From Blastocladiella emersonii ATCC 22665 (lineage: Eukaryota; Fungi; Blastocladiomycota), in NCBI GenBank assembly GCA_025594325.1, contig JANHCV010000001.1, forward strand, positions 1,922,001 through 1,986,000: a DNA stretch of 64,000 nt, read 5' to 3'. Within the stretch, counting starts at the first letter, position 1. Each line of letters starts with the position of its first letter. The notes beneath the pieces were generated by a model. It searched no databases, was not told the DNA's origin, and saw only the letters and a list, made by a program, of their open reading frames with translations. This document shows, one piece after another, positions 12,542 to 43,882 of the stretch. A program made the position numbers and the translations under genes.

Positions 12542-12720
12542 GTAAAGGTGACTACTCGCCCGAGCATGGAGAGCGAGCGCAAGAGGATCGGCGACCGAGT
12601 GGCGCCGAGCGTCTCGCGGCGGCCGCGTGACTGCAGCAGCGGAGACAAACACGCGCGAACCCGCCGGTTCTCCTCTCTTCTCTCCTCCAACGCCAGGATC
12701 GACACACTGTAAAGTAAACC

Positions 12721-13406
12721 ATGCAACCGCCAATGTACACCGAGTCCGTGAGCCCGACGCGCGTCGACCTGCACTTTGACCCTGCGGCCGTCGCCCTGAC
12801 GCCGCTCGAGCGCGTCATCATGTCGTCCAACGGGTCGCTGCAGCGCGTGCTGAGCGCCTTCTACAACGCGCCCATCGACGTCAAGCTCGTCAAGAACGTG
12901 GCCGTGCCGCAGGCCCCGTCGCCGACGCCCGACGCGCCCGTCTCGGCCGGCACCGATGAGGCGGCAGCGCAGGCGTCGCGGTGGCAGGTCGACCGCGAGA
13001 TCCACCTGCTGTGCCAGGGCGAGGTCCTGTGCGTCGCCAAGTCGTCGCTCGTCATCACGTCGCCCGACTACTACGACCTGCTCATCACGCGCGGCGTTGG
13101 GCTCGGCCAGTTCTTCCGGTACTGCCCCGCGATCTCGCGCCCCGACCATGACTGTCACTAACCATCGCTGACTTTGCGTGTAGCCACGTCGGCGTGCTAC
13201 CCGCCTTCGAGCTGCTCGAGGTCCGCAAGCCGGAGGCGCCCGCCGACATGTTCCGCCTGTACACGCTGAGCTGTCCCGGCGTCGTGTGCACCATCGGCGA
13301 GACGTTCCCGCACTGGATCGCGGACATGGACCAGCCCACGCGGTTGCAGGCCGCCGCCGACGCCGCCGCCGAGGCCAAGGCCAGCAACGGCCGCGCCAGT
13401 CACTAG
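12721..13406 (+). CDS. Chorismate-lyase/DUF98 (UbiC/Rv2949c-like fold) protein; intron 13119-13183
   Basis: LERVIMSSNGSLQRVLSAF...REIHL...LCVAKS...GLGQFFR|H...RLYTL...CTIGETF resembles the DUF98/chorismate-lyase pattern. GT..CTAAC..TAG intron restores the frame. Confidence 0.6.
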
Positions 13407-24200: not shown

Positions 24201-24668
24201 GCGCCGACTCCCGCGCCTGCTGCACCGGCACCGCTCGCCGACGACTTTGACCCGTTCAGCTTCCCAGCGATGCCCGCCGCCTCGGCGACGAGTCCGAAGC
24301 CGGCGCCGGCTCCGATGACGTTCAGCGGCGTGGGTGGCGGGGACGACCCGTTCCTGCAGCTCATGGGCGGCGGTTCCCCCGCGACGACGGCGGCGGCCGC
24401 GACTCCGGCGCACCCCGCTGCTGGTCCCGCGGCGGCGGCGGCGATCACGTCGGCGACGGCCTCGGCCGGCTCCCTGAACGGCGGCGGCACTCGCTCACCA
24501 ACGGGTGCGCGGTCGCCGTCGCCGACGTCGGGCGGCGATCCGGTGGTGACGGTCATGGCCATGGGGTTCAGCAAGGAGCAGGCGGTGCAGGCGCTGGAGC
24601 GGTACGATTTCGACGCGGAGAAGGCCATCAACTACCTGTTTGATTCGGGCGTGATGCCGTCGTCGTGA
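21300..24668 (+). CDS. EDE1: EH-domain endocytic scaffold Ede1/Eps15-like (EH domains, coiled coil, DPF motifs, C-terminal UBA)
   Basis: EH motifs (ARAFFLQSQQPNDVLSAVWRLA; MFSKSGLPAPELSKIWNLV...FIVAMHLI), a central coiled coil, repeated DPF, and UBA VMAMGFSKEQAVQALERYDFDAEKAINYLF. Confidence 0.9.
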   Translation: MPDAQFTATPAERPDYEAWFVGNGGNLAGDSIGVDGARAFFLQSQQPNDVLSAVWRLANRTNAPAALRFSDFCIAANLLMQIARRQLPAPPAALSQAFVDAADAFAAGTPPPAPTPFDPFPSTPAPPAPAPTGPAPSSAAARSMSISGVSATGMGSSFLDGYGSGPSGPGSAGGYTAPASPLRAIEPQRTGASIGGGSLAGLSAIPTHRTGGAPISPAPYGRPGSASAGGPPPMPRTALDGPLGAARVSSPSPLGRPSGSASPPSATIPRSLGGSSGADAPWAVPADKQATYGGYFVSVDAAGKGYATGAECFDMFSKSGLPAPELSKIWNLVTSDGQLRKEDFIVAMHLIFEKLAGKPIPDTMPADLIPPSRRPASAAAAPPAAPRALDLLNAGASVANNNASTASISSLSGSGPAPAAKNQTFEDIIGGGSGASATVPRGGASSFGMGGSLSALSASPSPAPAIAGLGGLGSGPSLSSTGPGAGTGLAPPSSSGLTGLGGLSGGPSSSGFATRGTTPGASGLGSMGSLSNLPTSGMFGSGGIGGANLATETRELNELVQKTESLTMQRIETTNALNHISVEKQNLMIRLGQAKVTFEAEEKLLEEMKEALDMETAAYESYKEEVLGLERQRVELQGEKRELQEGMIKHRHEADQLRNRIVSLNLEINSMRQELAKLREEAARERDNYEFNRQSVQNIEDTKDLIKKQLDAEQQAKLERDASRLIPPPPAPVPAAPMSPVTATSPQSPARAASPAPSGPASIKSPTSRAATMDMAFASPSSPPTSARPTSVGSAVGAFGSGNDPFAALASSPPMIPVQRTGGSIGNALGSADSIGRASNSKSPGAISARSFNMSMFPSPSQLPTVPTSPPPPMPAFASPLAGPTAAPAPAPAPEPVSAPTTVDEIPDEYKKEFDNDFSFDFQMVSPVQNTATATAVAAPVAANSDPFAAMMAAAPVPAPFMTSPTAAPTPAPAAPAPLADDFDPFSFPAMPAASATSPKPAPAPMTFSGVGGGDDPFLQLMGGGSPATTAAAATPAHPAAGPAAAAAITSATASAGSLNGGGTRSPTGARSPSPTSGGDPVVTVMAMGFSKEQAVQALERYDFDAEKAINYLFDSGVMPSS

Positions 24669-27314
24669 TCGCAGCTCGGTCGATGCGAGTAGTTTGGCAC
24701 GAGCGAGTGCAATACAGAGTGTGTAAGATCTAGTTGCTTTTCGTGTGGTGAGGGTGCGATAAAGCGAGTGCGTCGACAGGAACCGCGGCCGCCATGCGCC
24801 GCGACGCGTCGGTGACCGAGGATAGCGAGCGAATGCGTGTGCAAGACTGAGGCGCGCACTTCAGTTCCATAACAAGAACGTCGCGACCAGCTTTATGGTG
24901 AGGGTCGAGGATGAGAGGCAAAGACTCGGAGCCTTGTGGCGGGACGCGTCCTACTCTCGCTGCGTCCCGCGCGAGGGATACTGTTCACTCGTGGAAGGGA
25001 GTACAAGGACAATTACCTGCCTACGTAACAAAGCAGAGAGCAAACTTGAGAGCGACTTAGAGCAGCAACGGTTGAGGAGCGGGCCAACGAAAGTCGGCGA
25101 GACGCGGTTCGGTGTGGCGCAACGCGTCGGCCGCGACTGGATGGATCACTTCACTTGGACCGCACGAGGTTCACGTCGTGTAAGCCGCTCGCAAAGTGCC
25201 CCGATGAGACCGTCACAGATGAACCATGGGTTGAACCACAGAGGTGGAGCGTCGCCATCACACGCTTCCGCGCCCGTCGGCCCCCAAAATCGCCCATGCA
25301 CGACTCTCCTTCGCTCGAATCTCGAGTTCAACCCGACGAACTCATCGAGGATCCAACGAGTGAAGTGAAGGCGAAGCGATGCGAGAGCAGCGGCGGCGAC
25401 GGGGACCCACGAGGGCACACTCTTTTTCAGGCACGCACGCAAACGAGAAGCACGCCAGCGGGAGAGCCACGAGGGACCGCCGCCGGCGCGGGCACAGCAA
25501 ACAAAGCGGCGGCATGGGACGCTCCCTCGCCGTCGAGTCCTGCGAGCACAAGAGCACAGAAGCGGCAGCACACGCAGCAACACAAGCACACACGCACAAG
25601 CACCGCAGGCAGCCAAGGAACGTCGAGAACAGCGCGGGACGCGTGAAGGGAGCGCGACGCGACGCGTTGTGGAGGACAACTGTTGCATAAAATCCGTGAT
25701 CTAGCCTGATCCCGCCACTTGATGCCGAGAGAGAGAAAGAGCCGGTTGCAGCGGCGGCCGAGGCGCACCTTGCTGGCCCGGCAAAAGTCGGGAAAACAAA
25801 TCCTTGGGTGCCGGAGCCGGGAGTCGGAAGCGAGAGTGCGGAAGCGCGCCGGTTGCCTCGCTCCGACCCGCCCACTCGTCGAGCCCAACCCGCCAGAAAC
25901 GAACCCTAACCTCACTCAACCTGCCCGCCGCTCGCCTCACCGCGTCGGTCGACGATCCGAGCCGAGTCGGAAGCCGGGAACCGTGGGGATCCGTCACAGC
26001 CGCGAACGCTCGGAGCGAGTTTCGCGCTGCGCCATGGCGGTGGCGGACCGAGGGGGAGGCGGAGGCGGAGGCGGAGGCGGCGCCTCACCCACCCATCACG
26101 ACGCCACGATGGCGACGGCGGCGCAAGGGAGATCCGGAAGAAATCTCGTTGTCCCAGCGACGCACGGCCACGGCCACGGCCACGGTGCGACCAACGTCGG
26201 GTGCGACCAACGTCGGGCGCGACTCGCGCTCGCTGCCAGCGCACGCGCCCACAAAAGTCCCGAGTCGGTGGATCACGGCCGGCATCAAGCTGGCGTAGAT
26301 GAAGAAGCAGCCCTGGCGTAGCTGGCGTTGCCGCTGGCGTACGCAGCTGGCGTAGTGTGCCCGACATGTGAGCGGGCCGCGGTCGTCGCGTCGCGAGCGA
26401 GCGAGAAGGCTTCTCTGCTCGTTCCATCATATTGTGAGGGGGTCCTGGACGACGGGACGCACGGCAGCAGCTGCAGCACCGCGACACTGAAGGGCAACAG
26501 TGACAAGCCGTGACAGAGGCTCTATGATTGGACGCCCGCCGGCGAGCGTCGCCAGCTTCGCCAGCTTCGCCAGCTTCGCGCTAGCGCGCGCGCGCGTGAC
26601 CTCCTTTGTGTTCACGAGAGCGAGCGAGTGAGTGAGTGAGTGCTTGAACCGTTTCACCCGAGGCGGCGGCGAGGGCGTCCGAGGGCGGCGCCTCACATCC
26701 GAGACGGAGACGCGGCGAGGGAGGGGAGGGGGGGGGGGTGGCTAGCGCGCGCTCCAATATGGGGCGGACAGCAGTGCAGCGCAGCCTCACGCACGCTGCC
26801 AGCGGCAGAATCTTCTCGACCATGCGGGCGCCGCCAGCCCCCCCTTGCGCCACAAGCAAACGCCATCATGTGGCCCTCTTCGCCAGCTGGCGTAAACCGG
26901 CGTCGCGGGGGGCGGGGACCATGTGCAGCCAGAGATGGTCACACTGAGGCAAGCGGGCCATGCGCCTGTGTCCTGCTGCCGCCGCCGCAGCGCGCGCTCG
27001 CCACCGGTGCCGCAGTGCCTCAGTGACGGTGACGTCTGCAGCAGCCCCGATGTGTGCGCGGCCGCGGGGGAATATGGCGCTAGGACCCCCCCCCTCGCGC
27101 GTCTCGGACGCCTCGATTCAAATACGGCCGCGCCCCCGCGCTCCCCGGGTCTTGTTCGAGCATAGAGTGCATCCAGCTAGAGCGCTGAGCAACACGTCGT
27201 CGTCGAGGCCCATCACCATCAACCAGCCCCCACGTCGTCGCCCGCTCCTCTGCCCGAATCGGACCGCACATCGCCCACCACCGACCAAGCACCAACACCA
27301 TCACCATCACCATC

Positions 27315-29841
27315 ATGACCGCTGACGAGAAGCACCTCAACGAGAAGGCCGCCGAGGTCGAGGGCGGCGAGTCGAGTCTCGTCATGGACGCCGACTTCGA
27401 GGAGATGATCTCCAAGGTCGTGCCCACGACCGACGACACGTCGCTGCCGTCGTTCACGCTGCGCGTGTGGATCATCGGCACCTTCTTCTGCTTTGTGCTC
27501 GGCGGTACGGTCACTCTTTTCTCGTCGGTTCTGCTGGCTCGGTCGCGCGGCGTTCGCTGCGGTGGCGGAATCGCGGTCGCATCATGGCCGCGATCACGAC
27601 GCACGCGCGGGCTCGCTCGACCACGACCACGACCACGACCGCCGCCTCGCATCGCGCACGCACGCCAATCAGTGTCACTCACAATTTGCCCCGTCACGCC
27701 TCGTAGCCATCAACACGCTCTTCCTGTTCCGCTCGGTCGCCTTCTCCGTGTCCAGCTACGTCGCCATCCTGCTCGCCTACCCCATGGGTGTGTTCATGGC
27801 CAAGACGGTGCCGTCGGTCAAGTTCAACCTGTTCGGCATCGAGGTCGACACCAACCCGGGCCCCTTCTCGGTCAAGGAGCACGTCCTGATCAACATCTTC
27901 GCCACGACCGGCGCCTCGTCCATCTACGGTATCGACAACCTCGGCGTGCAGGAGATCTTCTACGACCTCGACATTGGCCACTTCTGGGGCATCGCGTTCC
28001 TGTTCTGCTCGGCCACGCTCGGCTTCGGTATCGCCGGCATGTGCCGCTCGTTCATCATCCGCCCCAAGGCCATGATCTGGCCCTCGATCCTGCCGTCGGT
28101 CGCCATGTTCATGGCGTTCCACCAGGGCGACCTGCACTCGGCCGTCGAGGACGAGGTCAAGGCCGACTCGGCCGGCAAGCAGGAGTGGTCGCAGCTCAAG
28201 ATGTTCGGCATCGGCACCCTCGCCATGACCATCTACACGTTCCTGCCCTCGTTCGTCGCGCCCATGCTGCGCTACATCCCGCTCCTGTGCTTCTTCTCGC
28301 CCTCGGACTCGATCATGCAGAAGCTCGGCTCGCCCACCTGGGGCCCCGGTATCGCTGCACTGTCGCTCGACTGGACGATCATTGGGTCCGGCCCCATGTC
28401 GGTCCCCTTCTGGGTCGCCGTCAACCAGCTCATCTCGTCCATCATCTTCCTGTGGATCGTGACCCCGCTCGCGTGGCAGGGCAACTGGTTCAACCAGCCC
28501 AAGACGGCGCTGCCCCTCAACACGACGGGCCTGTTCAAGAAGGACGGCAAGTCGTTCAAGGGCAACATGATCGTCGACAAGGAGACCAAGCGCGTCGTCG
28601 ACTCGCTGTACGACAAGGTCAAGCCGATCCACATGACGTCGCTCTTCGCCTTCGCGTACATGGGCCACTTTGCGTCGCTCACGTCGTCGGTCACCAACAC
28701 CATCGTCTGGCACGGCAAGGACATTGCCCGCCAGTGGCGCGCCGGCGGCAAGGCCGACAAGAACGACATCCACTGCCAGCTCATCGACAAGTACCCCGAG
28801 GTGCCCAACACCTGGTACTACGGCTTCTTCGTGTTCACGGGCATCCTGACCACCATCGTCGGCCACTTCTCGGGCCTCAACACGCCGTGGTGGGCCACCT
28901 TCTTCGCCGTCGCCCTGTCGGCCTTCGGCACGGTCCCGATCGCCATCGTGCTCGCCACCTCGGGCATCTCGCTCTACATGAACGTGGTCTCGCAGTTCCT
29001 CATCGGCCTCATCCTGCCCGGCCAGCCCATCGTCATGATGGCCTTCAAGTGCCTCGGTGTCACCGTCTCGCTCCAGTGCCTGACCCTTCTCTCGGATCTG
29101 AAGCTGGGTCACTACATGAAGGTATGTGGCAGCTTGCGCAGCTTGCGCAGCTTGTGCGACAAAACCAGATCTTTACACTGACCGCGATCTCGTTAATAGG
29201 TCCCGCCTCGCCACGTGTTCCTGTCGCAGCTGCTGTCGCAGATCATGGCCGTCTTCTTCTGCTACATCACGTACAAGTTCTGGATGCAGAACCCCGCGCA
29301 CCGCGAGTGGGTCACGCTGTTCGGGTCCAAGGCCGCGACCAGCAACCAGTGGACGTCGCAGACGCTCAACACCTACTACTCGGCCTCGCTCATCTGGGGC
29401 GCCGTCGGTCCCAAGCGCTTCTTCTTCGAGTCGTCGTACGCGCCCGTCATCTACGTCGGTGTCGCCCTCGGCATCTCGCTGCCCATCGTGCTCCGCCTGT
29501 GCTACCTGTTCGTCGGCGGCCCGATCCCGTGGCAGCTCATCTACGCGCCCATCCTGCTCCAGCCCCAGGGTCCCTCGGGCAACCAGGCCTACCACTTCAC
29601 CGGCTTCCTCGTGTCGTTCTTCTTCCAGTTCTACGTCTACCGCTACCGCTCGGCGTGGTGGAAGAAGTACAACTACGTCCTGGCCACGGCCTTCGACGTC
29701 GGCTCGGCCCTCACCTCGCTCTTCATCACGCTCGTCATCGAGGACCAGGGCATCACGTTCCCCGCGTGGTTCCTCAACTGCGTCGACACCGAGGAGCAGA
29801 CGTACTGCGGCTACGGTGACTGGTGCCACATCGAGTCCTAA
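27315..29841 (+). CDS. Oligopeptide transporter (OPT family), copy 1; exons 27315-27504, 27707-29121, 29200-29841 (748 aa)
   Basis: TDDTSLPSFTLRVW, NPGPFSVKEHVLI, MIWPSILP and DLKLGHYMK|VPPR are OPT hallmarks. Both introns are GT..AG and restore the frame. Confidence 0.95.
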
Positions 29842-30405
29842 ACGGGCGCGGTGGTTGCTGTCTCCCTCCCCCCCCCCCCCCTTTTGTTTCCACATTGTTC
29901 TATAGATGGGATTCCACATTTTTGATCATCAATCACTTGTTCGTCTACTTCCTGTCTCTCGAGCGCGCCTTGTGCGTGTTCTCCTCACTCAGTTCTAGTC
30001 GAGGAACTCGTCGTGCTCCCGCGCACGCGAAGATGCGGTTGAATATGGTCTTTTGATCGAGCATTTGTCCGTTGCTTTTCTCGCGAGCGCAAAGTAGACT
30101 CATTGAAGAAAGCTCGAGGATCACGAGCGCAGGCTCGCACACGACGAGAGACGCGCCGGCGGCGGTGGACGAGCGCTCCGGCGGAGCGTTGAAACGCGCT
30201 GCGCCACACTGAGCGCTCCGACGGAACGCTGCTGAGACGCGCTGCGCCACACCGACGGAGCGCACTTTTCGTCGCCCGCCGGGCTGCCTCGCTGATCAGC
30301 TCGCCCATCACCGTGCTCCTATAAAAACCGCGGGCTACCGTCACTCACCGAACAGCAACAACAACCAATAGCAACAAGGCCCGCTCAACTAAACCCGCAA
30401 AAACC

Positions 30406-31563
30406 ATGTCGACCACCACTACTGCCGCCGCCTCGACCAGCAACACTCGCGCCAACGCGCACAGGATGCACTACGCGCGCCTCGCCTCGGCAAGTCCGGC
30501 CTCCAGGTGTCGCGCATCTGCCTTGGCATGATGTCGTACGGCTCGCCCGAGTGGCAGCCGTGGGTGCTTGACGCCGACCGCTCGCTGCCGCTGCTCAAGG
30601 CCGCCTGGGACGCCGGCATCAACTTCTTTGACACCTCCGACGTGTATTCGAATGGAGCTTCGGAAAAAAATCCTCGGCGACTTCATGCGCGAGCACGGGA
30701 TCAAGCGCACCGAGATTGTGGTTGCGACCAAGGTCAACTTCCAGGTCGGCGAGAACGCGGGCGACCAGTACGCGTTCGCGCAGCTGCCCGCCTTTGCGCA
30801 GGCCAACAAGCGCGGCCTCTCGCGCAAGTACATTTTCGAGGCCGTCGACGCCTCGCTCGCGCGCCTCGGCACCGACTACATTGACCTGTACCAGATCCAC
30901 GACTGGGACAGCAACACGCCCATCGAGGAGACCATCGAGGCGCTCCACGACCTGGTCAAGGCCGGCAAGGTGCGCTACATTGGCGCCTCGTCCATGTACG
31001 CGTGGCAGTTCGCCAAGGCGCAGGCCGTGGCCGAGCGCAACGGGTGGACCAAGTTTGTCAGCATGCAGAACCTCGTCAACCTGGCGTACCGCGAGGAGGA
31101 GTGCGAGATGCTGCCGCTGTGCCGCGACATGGGCGTCGGCGTGATCCCGTGGTCGCCGCTCGCCGGCGGCCTGCTGTCGGACAAGGGCAAGTCGACGACG
31201 TCGCTGCGCGCACAGACGGACGTGTACCATAGCATCCACGTCACCGAGGCCTCGTCGTCGTCCGAAGCGGCCGAGGTGTCGGACGAGGACCGCGCCAAGG
31301 CCATCGTCGCGGCGACTGACGACCGCATTCTCGCTGCGCTGCGCAAGGTGGCCGCGGCCCGCGGCGTGCCCGCGTCGCAGATCGCGCTCGCGTGGGTGCT
31401 CGCCAAGCCCGAGGTGTTGGCGCCCATCATCGGTATCGCCAAGGTCGCTTACCTCGAGGACGCGGTCGCGGTCGCGGCCCTCTCGATCACGCTCACGGCC
31501 GACAAGACGGCCGCCCTCGAGGCCCCCTACCTCCCCACCGCCGTCCGCGGCATCTTTGACTGA
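30406..31563 (+). pseudogene. Aldo-keto reductase (aryl-alcohol dehydrogenase-like), copy 1, with two frameshifts
   Basis: AKR motifs RLGKSGLQVSRICLGMM, FFDTSDVYSNG, VATKV, LARLGTDYIDLYQIH, KVRYIGAS and IPWSPLAGG. The frame is broken by a 5-bp duplication (cctcg, ~30480) and by A7 instead of A6 (30664-30670). Confidence 0.85.
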
Positions 31564-31996
31564 ATCTGTTTGATTGCTTAAGAGAAGCTCAATATAGTGA
31601 TACACTATGTTGCTTGGTGCTCAATCGTACAAATGTGCTCGTTCGGGATCTAAAAGCCCTAGCCCCGCACGTCGCGGCAAATAGCAGGCCATGAGCTGAT
31701 CCTACCCACGCGACGGAACCGCTGCACACCCACTGCGCGCCGGCCATGAGCGAGGGAGTTTTGGACGAGTTTTCCTCGCTCCGAGGGCCGGGGCGAGTGG
31801 CGTGCACAGATTCCTATGACACTTGAAGCCGCACGCCTGACTCACATTTTTTCTGGAGGATCGGAGCGAGCTGGTAGTCGTTTATGAGGCCGTTTGCTGG
31901 TCTGTTCGACTGATCGAGAACTCGTCGAATATGCAGTTTCTCCCGTCAAAAAAACGTTGGTTTTGGAGAAGAGCATTGATGAACGCCGGAGGGCAA

Positions 31997-32511
31997 AATC
32001 GGGATTCGAAGCAAAAGCTAAGCGCTCCGACGCAGCGCAGGCGGCGGCACCTTGTGAGGGCGCGGGGTCCTACGTGTCCTAGCTCACTCGACTCAGTGTG
32101 GGGCTGTTTTCCGGCGCGCGCCATCGCCTAAATGGGGGACGGCGACGCGCGGCGCGCGGCCGCGCGAGACATGCGCGCGTGAGGATCATACGCACGTGAT
32201 ATTTCGACGCATCCGCGACGCTATTTGTTTGTGTTCCTCAATACAAAATTTGTGAAGGATACGTCAACATGCAGTGCATTAGATAGCAGAGCAGACCAAG
32301 CATCAAACAACTGGGCCAAAAAGTAATCGGGATTCGAAGCAAAAGCAAGGGCTTCAAGCTTGCGCAGGCGGCGGCAGCCCCATTCCAGGGTGCGGGGTCC
32401 TGCGTGCTCTAACCACTCGACTGTGCCGTGGCTGTTTTATGCTGACGCGCCGTCGCCTAAATGGGGGACAGCGCACCCGCCGCAGCCGTGCGAGACAGCC
32501 TCACGTGATAT
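31997..32511. repeat. Degenerate direct repeat, two ~190-205-bp units (31997-32202, 32325-32511), period ~328 bp; mirrored at 35577-36091
   Basis: Units share exact blocks AATCGGGATTCGAAGCAAAAGC (22 bp), TCGCCTAAATGGGGGAC (17 bp) and CACGTGATAT, plus similar GCAGGCGGCGGCA and GCGGGGTCCT segments. Confidence 0.85.
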
Positions 32512-32759
32512 CGCAACGCGTCTCGCGCTTTGAGGCTCGCAACTCGCGACTCGCGACTCGCGATTCGCGCCTTGCGTCGTCTTGTTGTCGCGCTTGTTTC
32601 CAGTTTCTAGTTTCCGATCGTTTGCAGTGGTACGTTCGAGTCTTTGTGTGATTCGATGCAAAACGGAGCCATTCTACATAGCGTGAATTGGAAACTCCAC
32701 GCACAAAGAAACACACATTAATCACCATCGTTCCAGTGTCAAGCAAGCCAAGCTGCTCT

Positions 32760-34230
32760 AATCTGATGGTGGTCAGCTACGATGTTGAGGTTCGTGCCCT
32801 CGCCGCTCTTGATCCACTTGACAAATTGTAGCTGCGATTGATGATGAACGGCCAGCGCTTGCAGTTAACTGACTATGGTCGCGTCCTCGAGCGAGACGCA
32901 ACCCGTCGGCAGGCCCTTGTTGTTCCACTGCGCGATCCCGGCGCTATTGGTGAGGATGTCGAGCAGGTCGATGTTCTCGGACATGGGCAGGCCCGTGGTC
33001 GGGTCCTTGAGGTACAACATCCACTTCTCCTCAATGAGCTCGGTGCGGTACCGCTTGCTGAAGGGCCCTGCGCTTGGGCTTGACGTCACAGTACACGTGG
33101 TAGTAACTGACGACGTTCACGACCCACGAACAGTGACCGGCAGCAATCGGCTTGGACTTAATGCATTTCTCGCTGAACTTGTTGTTCTTGAGGTACGGCT
33201 TGAGCGTGTCGATGTTTGACTGGTCGATCTTCTCCTTGTTGAAGGTGATGAGCGACTCGAGGAAGGCGTCGACCTTGGCCATCCTGTTCTTGCCGGCCTT
33301 CCACCTGCGGTCCTTAGCGATCTTGCCCGCGGGCGACATGAGGACCATGAGGCGGCCACCGTATCCACGACCTCGGCTGACGGCGAACCGAACGACTTGA
33401 GTCTGGTCAAGTTGGTCTTGCTGAGCGTGTTGAGGGCGTTGGCGGCGGCGGCGAGCGCGGGCTCGGCAGCGCGCAGGTCCTCTTGACACTGGTGCTGCTT
33501 CTACTCGACCTTCTTGGTGAACTCGGCGACCTTGCGCTCCTCGGCGTCGGCAATGCTCTTCTCCTTGTTCACCTTCTCGGTGTCGATGCCAAAGAACTCA
33601 ATGAGCCGCTCGGCCTCCTCGATCTTGGCCTTGAGTTCGCCTGCGTGGCCAGCTTGGCCTTGAGGTCGTCGACCTGGGCGGCCCTAGCTCAGCATGATCT
33701 AGGACGCGATCATCGACGACGTGGACGACGCGAGTCGTTCAAGAGACTGCTTACTGGAACCAGCGTCGCCGACGGGCAGCGCGTTACCGCGCGGCGACTC
33801 GAGGATGCGGCTGATGCGCGAGATGTGAAAGATGGCTCCATCGAACAGCACAAGGTCCATGGCCGCGCTCATCTCGTTGTACTGGTCGAGCGCCCCCTCA
33901 AGAAGCTTCTTGAGCGAGGGCCAGTCCTTGGGCGCCGCAGTACTTGGGCCCGCGATGCGGCAGGCGAAATGCGTGTAGATGAGCGGCTCGGCGAGGATGA
34001 CGTTCTGTTCCTGGTCCTCGAAGTTTTTCTTCGCGAGCTCGCGCTGCATGACCGACAGCGCCTGGTTGTCGACCACGTCAATAACTTGCCTCTGTACACG
34101 CGCTTCGTCTCGTCGATCCACAGGCGCACGGACTCGACGTGCTCTTTGAGAAAGTCCTTTTGCGCGAACAGCTCGTCCAGGAAGATGTTCGACAGGTCGC
34201 GCAGGTTGAAGATGTCGAAAGTTCCTACGT
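32760..34230 (-). pseudogene. Internally deleted, frameshifted fragment of an axonemal (outer-arm beta-type, DNAH9/17-like) dynein heavy chain
   Basis: Collinear pieces: FNLRDLSNIF...VRLWIDETKRVY (end of AAA3), MDLVLFDGAIFHISRISRILESPRGNAL (start of AAA4), EDLRAAEPAL..LNTLSKTNLT.LKSFGSP (stalk CC1), VMVLMSPAGKIAKDRRWK...CSWVVNVV...DVKPKR (MTBD), GPF...WNNKGLP...RWP (AAA5). Stops and frameshifts throughout. Confidence 0.88.
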
Positions 34231-34639
34231 CACTGTGGGAGCAAACGGTTTGATTCGGGTGCTCACTCCTCCAGCAGTCAACTCGCCCCAATTTGAATTG
34301 ATCTGTCAATAATGCGACCTGCAGAATGTGCTTCCCGATCGCAAATTACTGATTTCCAAACCGTGTAGCAACGGCTTCCCGTTCGCTCCATTGCAAGTGT
34401 TGATCATTTTGTGAAGAGCGCAGAACCACGGTCATGGGCCTGAAAATGACAGCTTGAGCCTTGTGCTCGACTTGCGACTCGCGTGGCGGCGTACGAAGCA
34501 CCCAATCGCGTTGCGAGCGGTCAGGTGAAATGAATTACGCGACTCGACTTCGCCCCCTTCCGTTCTCGTGCGCCAATATCGGCAAGGCAGGATCGCCCAG
34601 GAATCCTTGCAACAAAAACCGCGCTACGCGACTGCTGCG

Positions 34640-35410
34640 GCCCGGGGGCACCTCCTTGTCGTGTTCTTCAACCAGCTTGATGAGCAAGACGTGGAACACC
34701 AGGTTGACGAGCGCCATGGTCCGCAGCAGCTCGAGCGCGACGGCCGAATTGCGGATCAGGCGCACGATATTGAGCGGATCGGTTTACTTTTGGCCGAGCT
34801 TGACCTTGGGCACGTCGACGCGCAGGTTCTTGGTGCTCAATAGCACCATGTCGCCGACCTTGTAGTCGGGGCCCTCGTGGCGACGGCGGTCGGCGTGCTT
34901 CTAGTACAGTTGCTTGGCGCGCTGGACATTCTGCTTCAGGTCGGCCTGGATTTCGAAGATGCCCCCGGTGAGCGCCGCGGACAACGAGAATCAATCCGAT
35001 TGCACCGGCGTTGGGGACATGCGCGTGTGGAACCCATAGTTGGTCATGAACGGGGACACGCCCGTCGACTAGTCGACCGAATTGTCTTTGGCTATCTCGC
35101 CTTGCCGGAGCAACTGGCCCCAGTTCGACTACTCCTTGTTGGCGAACATGGGCAGGTACACCTTGGGGGTCTCTGATTCATGCGCTTGGTCTGCGGGTGG
35201 TACGCCGTCATAAGCTTGGCCTTGATCTCGAGCGCGCCGCACATGGCAGACCAGAACCGCGACATGAACTGCAGACAACCCGCGGTCCGAAAGGATGTCG
35301 TCGGGCAGCCCGTGAGGTCGCACCACGTGCTTGAAGAAGGGGTTGGCAGTCATCAAAGCATTCGGTAGCGCGGCGAGTGGGATATGGCCAGTACTTGCTG
35401 CGAGTCGCGT
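34640..35410 (-). mobile_element. Degenerate Ty3/gypsy (Metaviridae) integrase remnant
   Basis: FFKHVVRPHGLPDDILSDRG, AYHPQT, SPFMTNYG, YKVGDMVLLSTKNL and AVALEL...VFHV (GPY/F region). Several in-frame TAG stops. No RT, RNase H or LTR identified. Confidence 0.85.
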
Positions 35411-36524
35411 CGTTCCAGCAAGGTTCCGCCGCCGTGTCACACAAAGACTCGAACGTACCACTGCAAACGATCGGAAACTAGAAACTGGAAACAAGCGCGA
35501 CAACAAGACGACGCAAGGCGCGAATCGCGAGTCGCGAGTCGCGAGTTGCGAGCCTCAAAGCGCGAGACGCGTTGCGATATCACGTGAGGCTGTCTCGCAC
35601 GGCTGCGGCGGGTGCGCTGTCCCCCATTTAGGCGACGGCGCGTCAGCATAAAACAGCCACGGCACAGTCGAGTGGTTAGAGCACGCAGGACCCCGCACCC
35701 TGGAATGGGGCTGCCGCCGCCTGCGCAAGCTTGAAGCCCTTGCTTTTGCTTCGAATCCCGATTACTTTTTGGCCCAGTTGTTTGATGCTTGGTCTGCTCT
35801 GCTATCTAATGCACTGCATGTTGACGTATCCTTCACAAATTTTGTATTGAGGAACACAAACAAATAGCGTCGCGGATGCGTCGAAATATCACGTGCGTAT
35901 GATCCTCACGCGCGCATGTCTCGCGCGGCCGCGCGCCGCGCGTCGCCGTCCCCCATTTAGGCGATGGCGCGCGCCGGAAAACAGCCCCACACTGAGTCGA
36001 GTGAGCTAGGACACGTAGGACCCCGCGCCCTCACAAGGTGCCGCCGCCTGCGCTGCGTCGGAGCGCTTAGCTTTTGCTTCGAATCCCGATTTTGCCCTCC
36101 GGCGTTCATCAATGCTCTTCTCCAAAACCAACGTTTTTTTGACGGGAGAAACTGCATATTCGACGAGTTCTCGATCAGTCGAACAGACCAGCAAACGGCC
36201 TCATAAACGACTACCAGCTCGCTCCGATCCTCCAGAAAAAATGTGAGTCAGGCGTGCGGCTTCAAGTGTCATAGGAATCTGTGCACGCCACTCGCCCCGG
36301 CCCTCGGAGCGAGGAAAACTCGTCCAAAACTCCCTCGCTCATGGCCGGCGCGCAGTGGGTGTGCAGCGGTTCCGTCGCGTGGGTAGGATCAGCTCATGGC
36401 CTGCTATTTGCCGCGACGTGCGGGGCTAGGGCTTTTAGATCCCGAACGAGCACATTTGTACGATTGAGCACCAAGCAACATAGTGTATCACTATATTGAG
36501 CTTCTCTTAAGCAATCAAACAGAT

Positions 36525-37682
36525 TCAGTCAAAGATGCCGCGGACGGCGGTGGGGAGGTAGGGGGCCTCGAGGGCGGCCGTCTTGTCGGCCGTGAGCGTG
36601 ATCGAGAGGGCCGCGACCGCGACCGCGTCCTCGAGGTAAGCGACCTTGGCGATACCGATGATGGGCGCCAACACCTCGGGCTTGGCGAGCACCCACGCGA
36701 GCGCGATCTGCGACGCGGGCACGCCGCGGGCCGCGGCCACCTTGCGCAGCGCAGCGAGAATGCGGTCGTCAGTCGCCGCGACGATGGCCTTGGCGCGGTC
36801 CTCGTCCGACACCTCGGCCGCTTCGGACGACGACGAGGCCTCGGTGACGTGGATGCTATGGTACACGTCCGTCTGTGCGCGCAGCGACGTCGTCGACTTG
36901 CCCTTGTCCGACAGCAGGCCGCCGGCGAGCGGCGACCACGGGATCACGCCGACGCCCATGTCGCGGCACAGCGGCAGCATCTCGCACTCCTCCTCGCGGT
37001 ACGCCAGGTTGACGAGGTTCTGCATGCTGACAAACTTGGTCCACCCGTTGCGCTCGGCCACGGCCTGCGCCTTGGCGAACTGCCACGCGTACATGGACGA
37101 GGCGCCAATGTAGCGCACCTTGCCGGCCTTGACCAGGTCGTGGAGCGCCTCGATGGTCTCCTCGATGGGCGTGTTGCTGTCCCAGTCGTGGATCTGGTAC
37201 AGGTCAATGTAGTCGGTGCCGAGGCGCGCGAGCGAGGCGTCGACGGCCTCGAAAATGTACTTGCGCGAGAGGCCGCGCTTGTTGGCCTGCGCAAAGGCGG
37301 GCAGCTGCGCGAACGCGTACTGGTCGCCCGCGTTCTCGCCGACCTGGAAGTTGACCTTGGTCGCAACCACAATCTCGGTGCGCTTGATCCCGTGCTCGCG
37401 CATGAAGTCGCCGAGGATTTTTTTCCGAAGCTCCATTCGAATACACGTCGGAGGTGTCAAAGAAGTTGATGCCGGCGTCCCAGGCGGCCTTGAGCAGCGG
37501 CAGCGAGCGGTCGGCGTCAAGCACCCACGGCTGCCACTCGGGCGAGCCGTACGACATCATGCCAAGGCAGATGCGCGACACCTGGAGGCCGGACTTGCCG
37601 AGGCGAGGCGCGCGTAGTGCATCCTGTGCGCGTTGGCGCGAGTGTTGCTGGTCGAGGCGGCGGCAGTAGTGGTGGTCGACAT
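36525..37682 (-). pseudogene. Aldo-keto reductase, copy 2, with the same two frameshifts
   Basis: Mirror of 30406-31563. T7 at ~37418-37424 and the duplicated cgagg at ~37600-37610 are both present. Confidence 0.85.
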
Positions 37683-38247
37683 GGTTTTTGCGGGTTTAGT
37701 TGAGCGGGCCTTGTTGCTATTGGTTGTTGTTGCTGTTCGGTGAGTGACGGTAGCCCGCGGTTTTTATAGGAGCACGGTGATGGGCGAGCTGATCAGCGAG
37801 GCAGCCCGGCGGGCGACGAAAAGTGCGCTCCGTCGGTGTGGCGCAGCGCGTCTCAGCAGCGTTCCGTCGGAGCGCTCAGTGTGGCGCAGCGCGTTTCAAC
37901 GCTCCGCCGGAGCGCTCGTCCACCGCCGCCGGCGCGTCTCTCGTCGTGTGCGAGCCTGCGCTCGTGATCCTCGAGCTTTCTTCAATGAGTCTACTTTGCG
38001 CTCGCGAGAAAAGCAACGGACAAATGCTCGATCAAAAGACCATATTCAACCGCATCTTCGCGTGCGCGGGAGCACGACGAGTTCCTCGACTAGAACTGAG
38101 TGAGGAGAACACGCACAAGGCGCGCTCGAGAGACAGGAAGTAGACGAACAAGTGATTGATGATCAAAAATGTGGAATCCCATCTATAGAACAATGTGGAA
38201 ACAAAAGGGGGGGGGGGGGGGAGGGAGACAGCAACCACCGCGCCCGT

Positions 38248-40774
38248 TTAGGACTCGATGTGGCACCAGTCACCGTAGCCGCAGTACGTCTGCTCCTCGG
38301 TGTCGACGCAGTTGAGGAACCACGCGGGGAACGTGATGCCCTGGTCCTCGATGACGAGCGTGATGAAGAGCGAGGTGAGGGCCGAGCCGACGTCGAAGGC
38401 CGTGGCCAGGACGTAGTTGTACTTCTTCCACCACGCCGAGCGGTAGCGGTAGACGTAGAACTGGAAGAAGAACGACACGAGGAAGCCGGTGAAGTGGTAG
38501 GCCTGGTTGCCCGAGGGACCCTGGGGCTGGAGCAGGATGGGCGCGTAGATGAGCTGCCACGGGATCGGGCCGCCGACGAACAGGTAGCACAGGCGGAGCA
38601 CGATGGGCAGCGAGATGCCGAGGGCGACACCGACGTAGATGACGGGCGCGTACGACGACTCGAAGAAGAAGCGCTTGGGACCGACGGCGCCCCAGATGAG
38701 CGAGGCCGAGTAGTAGGTGTTGAGCGTCTGCGACGTCCACTGGTTGCTGGTCGCGGCCTTGGACCCGAACAGCGTGACCCACTCGCGGTGCGCGGGGTTC
38801 TGCATCCAGAACTTGTACGTGATGTAGCAGAAGAAGACGGCCATGATCTGCGACAGCAGCTGCGACAGGAACACGTGGCGAGGCGGGACCTATTAACGAG
38901 ATCGCGGTCAGTGTAAAGATCTGGTTTTGTCGCACAAGCTGCGCAAGCTGCGCAAGCTGCCACATACCTTCATGTAGTGACCCAGCTTCAGATCCGAGAG
39001 AAGGGTCAGGCACTGGAGCGAGACGGTGACACCGAGGCACTTGAAGGCCATCATGACGATGGGCTGGCCGGGCAGGATGAGGCCGATGAGGAACTGCGAG
39101 ACCACGTTCATGTAGAGCGAGATGCCCGAGGTGGCGAGCACGATGGCGATCGGGACCGTGCCGAAGGCCGACAGGGCGACGGCGAAGAAGGTGGCCCACC
39201 ACGGCGTGTTGAGGCCCGAGAAGTGGCCGACGATGGTGGTCAGGATGCCCGTGAACACGAAGAAGCCGTAGTACCAGGTGTTGGGCACCTCGGGGTACTT
39301 GTCGATGAGCTGGCAGTGGATGTCGTTCTTGTCGGCCTTGCCGCCGGCGCGCCACTGGCGGGCAATGTCCTTGCCGTGCCAGACGATGGTGTTGGTGACC
39401 GACGACGTGAGCGACGCAAAGTGGCCCATGTACGCGAAGGCGAAGAGCGACGTCATGTGGATCGGCTTGACCTTGTCGTACAGCGAGTCGACGACGCGCT
39501 TGGTCTCCTTGTCGACGATCATGTTGCCCTTGAACGACTTGCCGTCCTTCTTGAACAGGCCCGTCGTGTTGAGGGGCAGCGCCGTCTTGGGCTGGTTGAA
39601 CCAGTTGCCCTGCCACGCGAGCGGGGTCACGATCCACAGGAAGATGATGGACGAGATGAGCTGGTTGACGGCGACCCAGAAGGGGACCGACATGGGGCCG
39701 GACCCAATGATCGTCCAGTCGAGCGACAGTGCAGCGATACCGGGGCCCCAGGTGGGCGAGCCGAGCTTCTGCATGATCGAGTCCGAGGGCGAGAAGAAGC
39801 ACAGGAGCGGGATGTAGCGCAGCATGGGCGCGACGAACGAGGGCAGGAACGTGTAGATGGTCATGGCGAGGGTGCCGATGCCGAACATCTTGAGCTGCGA
39901 CCACTCCTGCTTGCCGGCCGAGTCGGCCTTGACCTCGTCCTCGACGGCCGAGTGCAGGTCGCCCTGGTGGAACGCCATGAACATGGCGACCGACGGCAGG
40001 ATCGAGGGCCAGATCATGGCCTTGGGGCGGATGATGAACGAGCGGCACATGCCGGCGATACCGAAGCCGAGCGTGGCCGAGCAGAACAGGAACGCGATGC
40101 CCCAGAAGTGGCCAATGTCGAGGTCGTAGAAGATCTCCTGCACGCCGAGGTTGTCGATACCGTAGATGGACGAGGCGCCGGTCGTGGCGAAGATGTTGAT
40201 CAGGACGTGCTCCTTGACCGAGAAGGGGCCCGGGTTGGTGTCGACCTCGATGCCGAACAGGTTGAACTTGACCGACGGCACCGTCTTGGCCATGAACACA
40301 CCCATGGGGTAGGCGAGCAGGATGGCGACGTAGCTGGACACGGAGAAGGCGACCGAGCGGAACAGGAAGAGCGTGTTGATGGCTACGAGGCGTGACGGGG
40401 CAAATTGTGAGTGACACTGATTGGCGTGCGTGCGCGATGCGAGGCGGCGGTCGTGGTCGTGGTCGTGGTCGAGCGAGCCCGCGCGTGCGTCGTGATCGCG
40501 GCCATGATGCGACCGCGATTCCGCCACCGCAGCGAACGCCGCGCGACCGAGCCAGCAGAACCGACGAGAAAAGAGTGACCGTACCGCCGAGCACAAAGCA
40601 GAAGAAGGTGCCGATGATCCACACGCGCAGCGTGAACGACGGCAGCGACGTGTCGTCGGTCGTGGGCACGACCTTGGAGATCATCTCCTCGAAGTCGGCG
40701 TCCATGACGAGACTCGACTCGCCGCCCTCGACCTCGGCGGCCTTCTCGTTGAGGTGCTTCTCGTCAGCGGTCAT
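38248..40774 (-). CDS. Oligopeptide transporter (OPT family), copy 2, identical translation
   Basis: Mirror image of 27315-29841; exons 40774-40585, 40382-38968, 38889-38248. Confidence 0.95.
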
Positions 40775-43420
40775 GATGGTGATGGTGATGGTGTTGGTGC
40801 TTGGTCGGTGGTGGGCGATGTGCGGTCCGATTCGGGCAGAGGAGCGGGCGACGACGTGGGGGCTGGTTGATGGTGATGGGCCTCGACGACGACGTGTTGC
40901 TCAGCGCTCTAGCTGGATGCACTCTATGCTCGAACAAGACCCGGGGAGCGCGGGGGCGCGGCCGTATTTGAATCGAGGCGTCCGAGACGCGCGAGGGGGG
41001 GGGTCCTAGCGCCATATTCCCCCGCGGCCGCGCACACATCGGGGCTGCTGCAGACGTCACCGTCACTGAGGCACTGCGGCACCGGTGGCGAGCGCGCGCT
41101 GCGGCGGCGGCAGCAGGACACAGGCGCATGGCCCGCTTGCCTCAGTGTGACCATCTCTGGCTGCACATGGTCCCCGCCCCCCGCGACGCCGGTTTACGCC
41201 AGCTGGCGAAGAGGGCCACATGATGGCGTTTGCTTGTGGCGCAAGGGGGGGCTGGCGGCGCCCGCATGGTCGAGAAGATTCTGCCGCTGGCAGCGTGCGT
41301 GAGGCTGCGCTGCACTGCTGTCCGCCCCATATTGGAGCGCGCGCTAGCCACCCCCCCCCCCTCCCCTCCCTCGCCGCGTCTCCGTCTCGGATGTGAGGCG
41401 CCGCCCTCGGACGCCCTCGCCGCCGCCTCGGGTGAAACGGTTCAAGCACTCACTCACTCACTCGCTCGCTCTCGTGAACACAAAGGAGGTCACGCGCGCG
41501 CGCGCTAGCGCGAAGCTGGCGAAGCTGGCGAAGCTGGCGACGCTCGCCGGCGGGCGTCCAATCATAGAGCCTCTGTCACGGCTTGTCACTGTTGCCCTTC
41601 AGTGTCGCGGTGCTGCAGCTGCTGCCGTGCGTCCCGTCGTCCAGGACCCCCTCACAATATGATGGAACGAGCAGAGAAGCCTTCTCGCTCGCTCGCGACG
41701 CGACGACCGCGGCCCGCTCACATGTCGGGCACACTACGCCAGCTGCGTACGCCAGCGGCAACGCCAGCTACGCCAGGGCTGCTTCTTCATCTACGCCAGC
41801 TTGATGCCGGCCGTGATCCACCGACTCGGGACTTTTGTGGGCGCGTGCGCTGGCAGCGAGCGCGAGTCGCGCCCGACGTTGGTCGCACCCGACGTTGGTC
41901 GCACCGTGGCCGTGGCCGTGGCCGTGCGTCGCTGGGACAACGAGATTTCTTCCGGATCTCCCTTGCGCCGCCGTCGCCATCGTGGCGTCGTGATGGGTGG
42001 GTGAGGCGCCGCCTCCGCCTCCGCCTCCGCCTCCCCCTCGGTCCGCCACCGCCATGGCGCAGCGCGAAACTCGCTCCGAGCGTTCGCGGCTGTGACGGAT
42101 CCCCACGGTTCCCGGCTTCCGACTCGGCTCGGATCGTCGACCGACGCGGTGAGGCGAGCGGCGGGCAGGTTGAGTGAGGTTAGGGTTCGTTTCTGGCGGG
42201 TTGGGCTCGACGAGTGGGCGGGTCGGAGCGAGGCAACCGGCGCGCTTCCGCACTCTCGCTTCCGACTCCCGGCTCCGGCACCCAAGGATTTGTTTTCCCG
42301 ACTTTTGCCGGGCCAGCAAGGTGCGCCTCGGCCGCCGCTGCAACCGGCTCTTTCTCTCTCTCGGCATCAAGTGGCGGGATCAGGCTAGATCACGGATTTT
42401 ATGCAACAGTTGTCCTCCACAACGCGTCGCGTCGCGCTCCCTTCACGCGTCCCGCGCTGTTCTCGACGTTCCTTGGCTGCCTGCGGTGCTTGTGCGTGTG
42501 TGCTTGTGTTGCTGCGTGTGCTGCCGCTTCTGTGCTCTTGTGCTCGCAGGACTCGACGGCGAGGGAGCGTCCCATGCCGCCGCTTTGTTTGCTGTGCCCG
42601 CGCCGGCGGCGGTCCCTCGTGGCTCTCCCGCTGGCGTGCTTCTCGTTTGCGTGCGTGCCTGAAAAAGAGTGTGCCCTCGTGGGTCCCCGTCGCCGCCGCT
42701 GCTCTCGCATCGCTTCGCCTTCACTTCACTCGTTGGATCCTCGATGAGTTCGTCGGGTTGAACTCGAGATTCGAGCGAAGGAGAGTCGTGCATGGGCGAT
42801 TTTGGGGGCCGACGGGCGCGGAAGCGTGTGATGGCGACGCTCCACCTCTGTGGTTCAACCCATGGTTCATCTGTGACGGTCTCATCGGGGCACTTTGCGA
42901 GCGGCTTACACGACGTGAACCTCGTGCGGTCCAAGTGAAGTGATCCATCCAGTCGCGGCCGACGCGTTGCGCCACACCGAACCGCGTCTCGCCGACTTTC
43001 GTTGGCCCGCTCCTCAACCGTTGCTGCTCTAAGTCGCTCTCAAGTTTGCTCTCTGCTTTGTTACGTAGGCAGGTAATTGTCCTTGTACTCCCTTCCACGA
43101 GTGAACAGTATCCCTCGCGCGGGACGCAGCGAGAGTAGGACGCGTCCCGCCACAAGGCTCCGAGTCTTTGCCTCTCATCCTCGACCCTCACCATAAAGCT
43201 GGTCGCGACGTTCTTGTTATGGAACTGAAGTGCGCGCCTCAGTCTTGCACACGCATTCGCTCGCTATCCTCGGTCACCGACGCGTCGCGGCGCATGGCGG
43301 CCGCGGTTCCTGTCGACGCACTCGCTTTATCGCACCCTCACCACACGAAAAGCAACTAGATCTTACACACTCTGTATTGCACTCGCTCGTGCCAAACTAC
43401 TCGCATCGACCGAGCTGCGA

Positions 43421-43882
43421 TCACGACGACGGCATCACGCCCGAATCAAACAGGTAGTTGATGGCCTTCTCCGCGTCGAAATCGTACCGCTCCAGCGCCT
43501 GCACCGCCTGCTCCTTGCTGAACCCCATGGCCATGACCGTCACCACCGGATCGCCGCCCGACGTCGGCGACGGCGACCGCGCACCCGTTGGTGAGCGAGT
43601 GCCGCCGCCGTTCAGGGAGCCGGCCGAGGCCGTCGCCGACGTGATCGCCGCCGCCGCCGCGGGACCAGCAGCGGGGTGCGCCGGAGTCGCGGCCGCCGCC
43701 GTCGTCGCGGGGGAACCGCCGCCCATGAGCTGCAGGAACGGGTCGTCCCCGCCACCCACGCCGCTGAACGTCATCGGAGCCGGCGCCGGCTTCGGACTCG
43801 TCGTCGCGGCAGCGGGCATCGCTGGGGAGCTGAACGGGTTAAAGTTGAACGGGTTAAAGTTGTGAGCTGGAGCCGCGGCCAT
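43421..43882 (-). CDS. Truncated EDE1 derivative ORF (153 aa from ATG 43882): NPF-NPF, Pro/Ala linker, UBA; may be a non-expressed fragment
   Basis: Reads MAAAPAHNFNPFNFNPFSSPAM..., then is identical to the last ~127 codons of EDE1 including the UBA and stop. Confidence 0.4.
   Translation of the reverse strand: MAAAPAHNFNPFNFNPFSSPAMPAAATTSPKPAPAPMTFSGVGGGDDPFLQLMGGGSPATTAAAATPAHPAAGPAAAAAITSATASAGSLNGGGTRSPTGARSPSPTSGGDPVVTVMAMGFSKEQAVQALERYDFDAEKAINYLFDSGVMPSS

Follow-up and report, generated by a model that had tools for sequence, protein, structure and literature searches.

A large gene-bearing palindrome lies on contig JANHCV010000001.1 of the fungus Blastocladiella emersonii ATCC 22665 (Blastocladiomycota; assembly GCA_025594325.1), within a stretch of 64,000 nucleotides (nt; positions 1,922,001 to 1,986,000) that is termed the window here. 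Positions are those of the window unless a contig is named, and an exact-protein look-up places the record position at the window position plus 1,922,000. The palindrome comprises two inverted arms around a single-copy spacer, and the arms share an identical core at 24286–32651 on the left (forward strand, 8366 nt) and 35437–43803 on the right (reverse strand, 8367 nt). A repeat search followed by base-by-base comparison shows that the two cores are exact reverse complements over 8366 nt, with no mismatches and one indel. This sole difference in core length is a run of C residues, 14 on the left and 15 on the right (~29868–29885 and 38204–38220); the repeat search reports two abutting inverted pairs, 24244–29885 with 38204–43845 and 29868–32651 with 35437–38220, whose registers are one base apart. 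BLAST of arm against arm gives a single alignment of 8409 columns with five mismatches and one gap, and all five mismatches (24249, 24262, 24278, 24282 and 24285) fall within the outermost 42 nt. The initial annotation of this DNA had described mirror identity from 24286/43803 to 32651/35437 with one homopolymer base differing; base by base this is exact for the core, while the homology itself runs 42 nt further out. The spacer measures 2785 nt, and in having multi-kilobase inverted arms with >99% identity around a unique spacer the locus shares the form of palindromes that are maintained through gene conversion. Base composition in the window is 57–75% G+C.

Each arm carries the 3′ end of an Ede1/Eps15-like gene, an oligopeptide transporter (OPT) gene and an aldo-keto reductase gene. 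The Ede1-like gene is complete at 21300–24668 (forward strand), where it encodes EH domains, a coiled coil and a C-terminal UBA domain; the last 425 nt lie in the left arm, so that the EH domains are outside the arm and the UBA domain is inside. Because this gene is complete only on the left, the left copy is taken to be the original. The OPT gene at 27315–29841 (forward strand, 748 amino acids) has an identical mirror at 38248–40774 (reverse strand), and the two are annotated as the pair KAI9189288/KAI9189293; the open reading frame (ORF) in the arm is 100% identical to a protein of B. emersonii ATCC 22665. OPT is intact in both arms, which thus carry intact protein-coding genes of an amplified family, a further feature of conversion palindromes. 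The reductase occupies 30507–31563 on the left (forward strand; annotated product 30652–31563, 303 amino acids, without the N-terminal 57 profile positions) and 36525–37581 on the right (reverse strand; annotated 36525–37436, with the same frame break). In both arms it is split over two reading frames, the first ~57 profile positions being out of frame with the remainder, and this break is either a shared frameshift, which would make the gene a pseudogene, or a homopolymer error. The shift amounts to one base, at a run of A residues near 30680, and the part that is out of frame includes, by eye, the usual region of the catalytic residues.

Within the innermost 650 nt of each arm, a dispersed and multi-copy repeat is present twice. 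These are diverged direct copies (77% alike) at 31997–32182 and 32325–32508 on the forward strand, with mirrors at 35580–35763 and 35906–36091; each unit is ~190 nt in length and ends near a CACGTGATAT word. In the sequencing runs described below, the repeat has a word depth of 350–800, with loose ends at the limits of the element, which indicates several more copies in the genome. No Rfam family was found in 24000–36000, and the repeat corresponds to no known RNA. The gene content given for the arms by the initial annotation (EDE1 3′ end, OPT, reductase) agrees with Pfam and the annotated products, with two amendments: the reductase is frame-broken, and the innermost part of each arm is occupied by this repeat. 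Tandem repeats in the arm and spacer are confined to short arrays, among them a 7-nt array at 32536–32576, ~75 nt inside the inner junction. Between Ede1 and OPT, 2.6 kb (24669–27314, mirror 40775–43420) have no annotated gene; this interval contains only short tandem arrays and gives no Rfam match, and between 25001 and 26000 there is a strong excess of A over T on the forward strand (AT skew 0.34).

Both outer flanks enter different unique genes, as had been proposed from the sequence and as annotation confirms. On the left, the arm ends inside the Ede1-like gene. On the right, the first unique gene is found at 44080–45738 (reverse strand) and encodes 510 amino acids; it is a multi-pass membrane protein by eye, has no Pfam match, and is complete and unrelated to Ede1. 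It is followed by further unique genes, including those for glutamate-cysteine ligase and a RibD_C protein. The copied 3′ end of Ede1 forms part of an annotated ORF of 153 amino acids with a UBA domain (43421–43882, reverse strand), the start codon of which lies 37 nt outside the homology. In this predicted product the copied UBA domain would be fused to a new start codon and a pair of NPF motifs, the motifs having arisen from DPF to NPF changes together with a tandem duplication.

The spacer (32652–35436, single-copy, 2785 nt) has a lower G+C content (57–60%) than the arms and consists of decayed fragments. Pieces of a multiply deleted axonemal dynein heavy-chain pseudogene extend over 32700–34310 on the reverse strand and comprise the AAA lid, the start of AAA4, the stalk and the start of AAA5; Pfam recognizes AAA_lid_1 (4e-11), AAA_8 (4e-13) and MT (2e-37), and the translation contains stops and frame changes. 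Word depth is ~2x over the stalk coiled coil at 33543–33797, and only two letters (33552 and 33557) distinguish this part from a paralogous contig. The dynein piece is therefore not foreign: a near-identical relative of ~33543–33797 is present elsewhere in the genome, and B. emersonii has flagellated zoospores (PMC9730499). The remainder of the spacer contains the decayed remnant of a Ty3/gypsy-type integrase (34640–35436, reverse strand), which was recognized in three-frame translation and assigned to its family by eye, the ORF tested having no Pfam match. The integrase is cut within its catalytic core, exactly at the arm boundary 35436/35437. In translation, neither the dynein nor the Ty3 pieces continue into the right flank, where the upstream part of the Ty3 element is absent.

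Perfect inverted repeats near the length of a read are a classic place for mis-assembly, and the structure might in principle be a fold-back chimera, a repeat mis-join or two haplotypes joined head to head. The assembly was made by LJA from PacBio HiFi reads (mean length 10.5 kb, 6.37 Gb for 34.27 Mb, ~186x) and polished with Illumina data (PMC9730499). Four public runs (X1 to X4) contain the locus; all derive from the assembly's own sample and so give no independent biological replication, and contigs built with k=31 were compared rather than raw reads, two circumstances that favour an artefact. In X1, X2 and X3, which were released in two different years, the spacer contigs start at 32622 and end at 35466, each 30 nt (k−1) into an arm, and in X2 an arm contig ends exactly at 32651. 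Contig ends 30 nt inside the arms are what a de Bruijn graph yields when an inverted repeat flanks a unique spacer. An overlap of 30 nt is the maximum for k=31 and falls one letter below the bridging threshold of the software, so that it counts as support at the level of words and not of reads. Word depth in X1 is 122–126 for the spacer and 244–254 for the arm (2.0x), in X2 it is 6–11 and 14–19, and in X3 it is 34–46 and 50–55. The lower ratio in X3 may reflect under-representation of the G+C-richer arms in short-read libraries. By word depth, the spacer is single-copy at both of its ends.

The junctions can be considered in order from left to right (J1 to J4). J1 lies in the intact Ede1-like gene, while J2 and J3 at the two ends of the spacer are novel, as is J4 at the outer right edge. 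For J4, words were drawn from a 127-nt stretch in which every 31-mer has at least one base specific to the right copy, and 8/8 sampled words are present in each of X1, X2 and X3. With all four junctions present once each and two copies of the arm, the only linear order allowed is flank–arm–spacer–arm–flank, the orientation of the spacer aside. An inversion heterozygote would be without J3, and a unique right flank would be missing from a simple fold-back; the right flank here has 20 kb of unique genes. The palindrome is a real chromosomal structure with two arm copies per genome, and an artefact is barely credible; the junction and depth test that had been suggested for it thus comes out in favour of the structure. 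Some minor features of the contigs are recorded here. X1 contains a contig joint 31551>36609, and X1 and X3 share a joint 32929>34190, with short sides of 21–26 nt and approximately single-copy depth; both probably derive from related sequences at other places in the genome and not from variants of the palindrome locus. Run X4 has a loose end at 32673 with letters that resemble a loxP site. This run, of low depth, is probably a Cre-lox mate-pair library, in which case the loxP-like letters are adaptor and not biology.

The two edges of the arms differ in character. At the outer edge, homology continues past the core for 42 nt (24244–24285 with 43804–43845). The left zone lies inside the intact Ede1-like coding sequence, on the forward strand (reading DFDPFSF...), and matches the right copy at 37 of 42 letters. 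The right zone (43804–43861, reverse strand) is composed of 42 nt at 88% identity and a 15-nt unit, AACTTTAACCCGTTC, which is present twice in tandem (43832–43861) and reads NFNPFNFNPF; opposite this unit, the left copy has GACTTTGACCCGTTC once. Differences are concentrated strongly in this zone: 5/42 positions (12%) differ, compared with 0/8366 in the core (Fisher p = 2.4e-12). Of the five substitutions, four alter an amino acid. Two of the changes on the right are GAC to AAC and are present in both copies of the tandem unit. As both units carry the same two G to A changes, the substitutions preceded the tandem duplication; a single slippage on an unmutated template would re-copy G, and the history of the outer edge is therefore one of several steps. 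Local alignment of the 1-kb flanks finds just one homologous zone of 41–42 nt (score 62 against 25±3 for shuffles). Anchored gapped extension beyond it, with one tandem unit removed, gives no significant homology further out (score 6 against 3.3±3.2 for decoys, p ~0.23), and when a template was sought for the 235 nt that separate the outer junction from the right-flank gene, only chance 11–12-mers emerged.

The inner ends, at 32651 and 35437, are abrupt. The two spacer ends show no residual similarity (score 24 against 22.8±2.6 for shuffles), and the bases just past the inner junction fail to pair, 32652/35436 and 32653/35435 both being mismatches, which leaves 0 nt of microhomology. An edge of this kind, which cuts a transposon remnant, resembles a primary breakpoint, and it brings in the proposal that the palindrome arose recently and in one step, by replication template switching or fold-back repair of the type termed MMBIR (break-induced replication mediated by microhomology) or FoSTeS (stalled forks with a switch of template). 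An end broken or stalled at the right end of the spacer, in the Ty3 remnant, would have been copied backwards through 8.4 kb of arm before a switch to the right flank; the outer substitutions and the 15-nt duplication would be errors of a low-fidelity polymerase, and the arms would be identical for lack of time. Zero substitutions in 8366 nt suit this proposal, as does the absence on the right of the rest of the Ty3 element, which inverted duplication with deletion predicts, and human inverted duplications with few-kilobase spacers and little or no junction microhomology are known (PMC10766186). The locus thus has the short spacer (2.8 kb) and the loss of distal sequence that are typical of fold-back or MMBIR events, and has neither microhomology at the switch points nor a fresh, non-diverged second junction. 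The outer edge speaks against a single step, since one error-prone pass over an unmutated template is inadequate to give two 15-nt units with the same two substitutions. Junction-associated mutagenesis is generally reported to be far sparser than 12% over 42 nt, and the differences found here are too dense for it. Together with the evidence from related loci that follows, this makes a young one-step origin possible but distinctly less likely than an old one.

The arm OPT belongs to a young subfamily in which inverted pairs recur. Its 90% cluster contains four B. emersonii proteins, of which P0001 (the protein of the locus described here), P0077 and P0079 have two accessions each; P0002, an 82% paralogue, also has two. 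The subfamily amounts to nine copies at five loci, and at four of the five loci the copies form inverted pairs, P0078 being single-copy; more distant OPTs (P0004, P0014 and P0019) are single-copy as well. The P0001 palindrome is convergent, with arms of 8.37 kb, no core differences and a spacer of 2.8 kb. That of P0079 lies on the same contig, ~550 kb past the end of the window (JANHCV010000001.1, ~2,531,502–2,550,033), and is divergent, with arms of 6978 nt, one mismatch and a spacer of 4.6 kb. P0077 is found on contig 14 (JANHCV010000014.1, ~358,456–398,711) in convergent orientation, with arms of ~7.3 kb, 15 differing columns and a spacer of 25.7 kb, and P0002 on contig 4 (JANHCV010000004.1, ~2,295,116–2,334,533) in divergent orientation, with arms of 7.7 kb, no core difference and a spacer of 24.0 kb. 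On a rough post hoc calculation, the chance of finding four of eight OPT loci in palindrome arms is of the order of 1e-8 if palindromic DNA amounts to ~130 kb (~0.4% of the genome), and ~1e-5 if the palindromic fraction is five times larger.

Comparison of the five OPT loci (L001, L003, L009, L011 and L013, positions ~9975–12800) shows that DNA homology between them is limited to the gene body, from ~25 nt before the start codon to the stop codon, with introns included, at 80–92% identity; the flanks show no similarity. This limit suggests either duplication of the gene body only or conversion between loci that is confined to the gene. Since flanks, orientations and boundaries all differ, each of the four palindromes stems from an inverted duplication of its own. 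The four sets of arms have a single intact gene in common, OPT, its neighbours being truncated pieces (Ede1 3′, ABC 3′, NUDIX 3′, LOR 5′ and lipase 5′) or the frame-broken reductase. Neither the dispersed repeat nor the spacer has a match at the sister OPT loci, and hence neither can be a common cause of the four palindromes. Only one assembly of B. emersonii was found. In the nearest relative found, Catenaria anguillulae, no neighbours are shared around the closest OPT, so the ancestral arrangement cannot be read from that genome.

In each of the four OPT palindromes the identity of the core is 100.000%, and no difference is found more than ~50 nt from an edge. In P0077, the 15 differing columns all belong to the 48 nt that come first at the outer (upstream) edge, after which 7245 nt are identical; outside the core there are ~230 nt of much weaker homology with indels (score 92 against 33±5 for shuffles), and the inner edge is abrupt (score 40 against 35±6). 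The one mismatch of P0079 is 7 nt from an edge, and in P0002 the few mismatches are confined to the final 15 nt at each edge. Directly after the derived arm of P0002 there is an older, third fragment of the OPT 3′ end (L004:16723–17451), the central 570 nt of which are 98.2% identical to the arm while its two ends are ~71% identical; this fragment appears to be what remains of an earlier inverted copy after partial conversion. What the present analysis adds is the recurrence of palindromes around OPT and the consistent combination of a perfect core with an outer rim that has diverged and an inner edge that is sharp. For a young origin, the old diverged homology of ~230 nt outside the perfect core of P0077 is an obstacle, and four OPT palindromes with flawless cores would require four independent and very recent events.

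The reading that we favour, with some reserve, is that an old inverted duplication underlies the palindrome and that its core has probably been kept identical by repeated re-copying between the arms. The contrast of 12% at the edge with 0% in the core, the several steps in the history of that edge, the diverged 230-nt flank of P0077 and the mosaic third fragment of P0002 all point to old duplications with re-copied interiors. An inverted duplication would have copied the block of Ede1 3′ end, OPT and reductase to the far side of the junk spacer, and repeated intrachromosomal recombination, by arm-to-arm gene conversion or break-induced re-copying, would then have kept the arms letter-identical. 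Recombination would need tens of bases of homology past its end point, and the outer 42 nt would accordingly go uncorrected and drift, with a rim of ~40–50 nt escaping correction at the OPT palindromes in general. Repair that starts near the spacer may run off the inner end of one arm and copy the opposite end of the spacer, so that arms would grow inward over junk; the inner boundary would then always be young, which could account for its sharp limit and for an integrase cut exactly there. The structure may be retained for the doubled dose of the OPT peptide transporter that it provides. We infer from the pattern that conversion causes the identity, that the arms grow inward and that selection acts on OPT dose. 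The initial annotation had offered either a recent inverted duplication that doubled OPT dosage or an older palindrome homogenized by conversion, with the outer junction hinting at the latter. The older palindrome gains from the multi-step edge and from the ~230 nt of diverged homology at P0077, the recent duplication loses ground and the choice stays unproven; the dosage idea is strengthened because four of five subfamily loci are palindromic.

Several points weigh against this reading. The pointers to concerted evolution are indirect and come from a single strain. The diverged zone at P0001 measures only 42 nt, and homology beyond it stands at p ~0.23. The inner edge has no diverged zone, which pure conversion does not predict, and to accommodate the sharp inner edge a conversion model must further assume that the arms grow inward; a primary breakpoint would account just as well for the integrase cut at 35436/35437. 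Identical cores at all four OPT loci could also reflect a recent burst, or a very rapid turnover, of inverted duplications. The proposed selection on OPT dose is argued from recurrence, and the read evidence comes from the assembly's sample, as k=31 contigs with a 30-nt overlap.

A broader proposal is that palindromes are maintained by conversion throughout the genome of B. emersonii, in a system comparable to that of the mammalian Y chromosome, which preferentially captures the young OPT family: four of the five loci would have become palindromes of 7–8.4 kb independently and would grow inward at the expense of their spacers, through strong and recurrent selection on dose or because OPT gene bodies seed inverted copies. 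We regard this as speculative and rather unlikely. Far more improbable is a functional device, such as a switch that works by inversion (flip-flop), a centromere of the inverted-repeat type or a hairpin-RNA locus, where read-through of convergent OPT genes would yield double-stranded RNA that tunes the nine-copy subfamily. The identical convergent transcription units 2.8 kb apart would suit such a device; the arms could recombine and flip the spacer, and the subfamily is 80–92% identical in DNA, which is near enough for cross-silencing. A flip, however, would alter nothing, as the spacer contains only decayed pseudogene and transposon pieces, no recombinase gene is called nearby, and two of the four OPT palindromes are divergent rather than convergent. 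A site-specific invertible switch was rejected on these grounds, namely a spacer with only decayed dynein and integrase and no recombinase called nearby. The inverted-repeat centromere, of which there is one per chromosome with a gene-poor core, was also rejected: the arms carry ordinary genes (OPT and gene parts), and a second OPT palindrome is found ~550 kb away on the same contig. The analogy to centromeres of the Komagataella and Candida tropicalis type that the initial annotation drew has no support for the same reasons.

The locus can be compared and contrasted with inverted duplications in other organisms. Palindromes of mammalian X and Y chromosomes (P1–P8 type) are >99% identical through arm-to-arm gene conversion (PMC8600007; PMC8327919; Rozen et al. 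2003, as cited in PMC5490193). Like these, the B. emersonii palindrome has kilobase-long, near-identical arms, a unique spacer and intact members of an amplified family, and its identity is best explained by conversion. Unlike these, it lies on an ordinary fungal chromosome, its arms are smaller (8.4 kb) and letter-perfect, and the case for conversion is built on diverged edges and sister loci instead of comparison across species.

Inverted amplification of nutrient transporters in yeast under selection, as at SUL1 by origin-dependent inverted-repeat amplification (ODIRA; PMC4689423, PMC10766183), is a parallel in which the shared features are an inverted extra copy of a transporter with parts of its neighbours and independent recurrence at related loci, in keeping with selection on dose. 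ODIRA gives an inverted triplication bounded by short inverted repeats, whereas the B. emersonii arms number two, their inner junction is free of microhomology and of short inverted repeats, and the outer edge is old. An ODIRA triplication was rejected for B. emersonii in view of the two copies (2.0x depth) and an inner junction without complementarity. Human inverted duplications with deletion (INV-DUP-DEL) of the fold-back type, which have a copy-neutral spacer (PMC10766186), resemble the locus in the order arm, few-kilobase spacer and inverted arm, in the loss of sequence beyond the spacer and in a homology-free junction. The locus differs from them in that it is interstitial, lacks a terminal deletion and is bordered to left and right by unique genes that are intact, and in having a diverged homologous zone as its outer junction.

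Palindromes of the asexual animals Adineta vaga and Folsomia candida (PMC5490193) are also gene-bearing and on ordinary chromosomes. A role for conversion is discussed for the palindromes of asexual animals, and the palindromic blocks of F. candida vary widely in synonymous divergence (Ks), concerted evolution not being supported there (PMC5490193); in contrast to those blocks, the cores here are identical. The inverted repeat of plastids offers a further parallel. Its copies are kept identical by recombination, its boundaries shift by re-copying into single-copy DNA, and the single-copy region can flip. The proposed identity by recombination and the moving boundaries are alike in the two cases, although the fungal palindrome is found on a linear nuclear chromosome and at much lower copy number.

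The genome paper for B. emersonii reports almost no gene duplication, with 3/255 BUSCO genes duplicated; the word ‘inverted’ is absent from it, and the OPT palindromes appear to be undescribed there (PMC9730499). In the library of papers searched, no link between Blastocladiella and palindromes was found, and the mentions of Blastocladiella OPT that were found are limited to expressed sequence tags. Instability is usually expected of large perfect palindromes, and the best-known examples are those of sex chromosomes. If many were present in a small fungal genome, they would provide a tractable system for their origin, their upkeep by conversion and the movement of their boundaries, and, in an asexual lineage, for a role in gene dosage or in mutation repair; no sexual cycle is known for B. 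emersonii. Four palindromes around one nutrient-transporter family make the dosage question testable. The strain is also a model for optogenetics and cell biology, and knocking out OPT or another arm gene would mean hitting two identical copies. The window contains a second, small inverted repeat of 177 nt at 4311–4487 and 9462–9638, with 99% complementary copies 4974 nt apart in sequence that looks coding.

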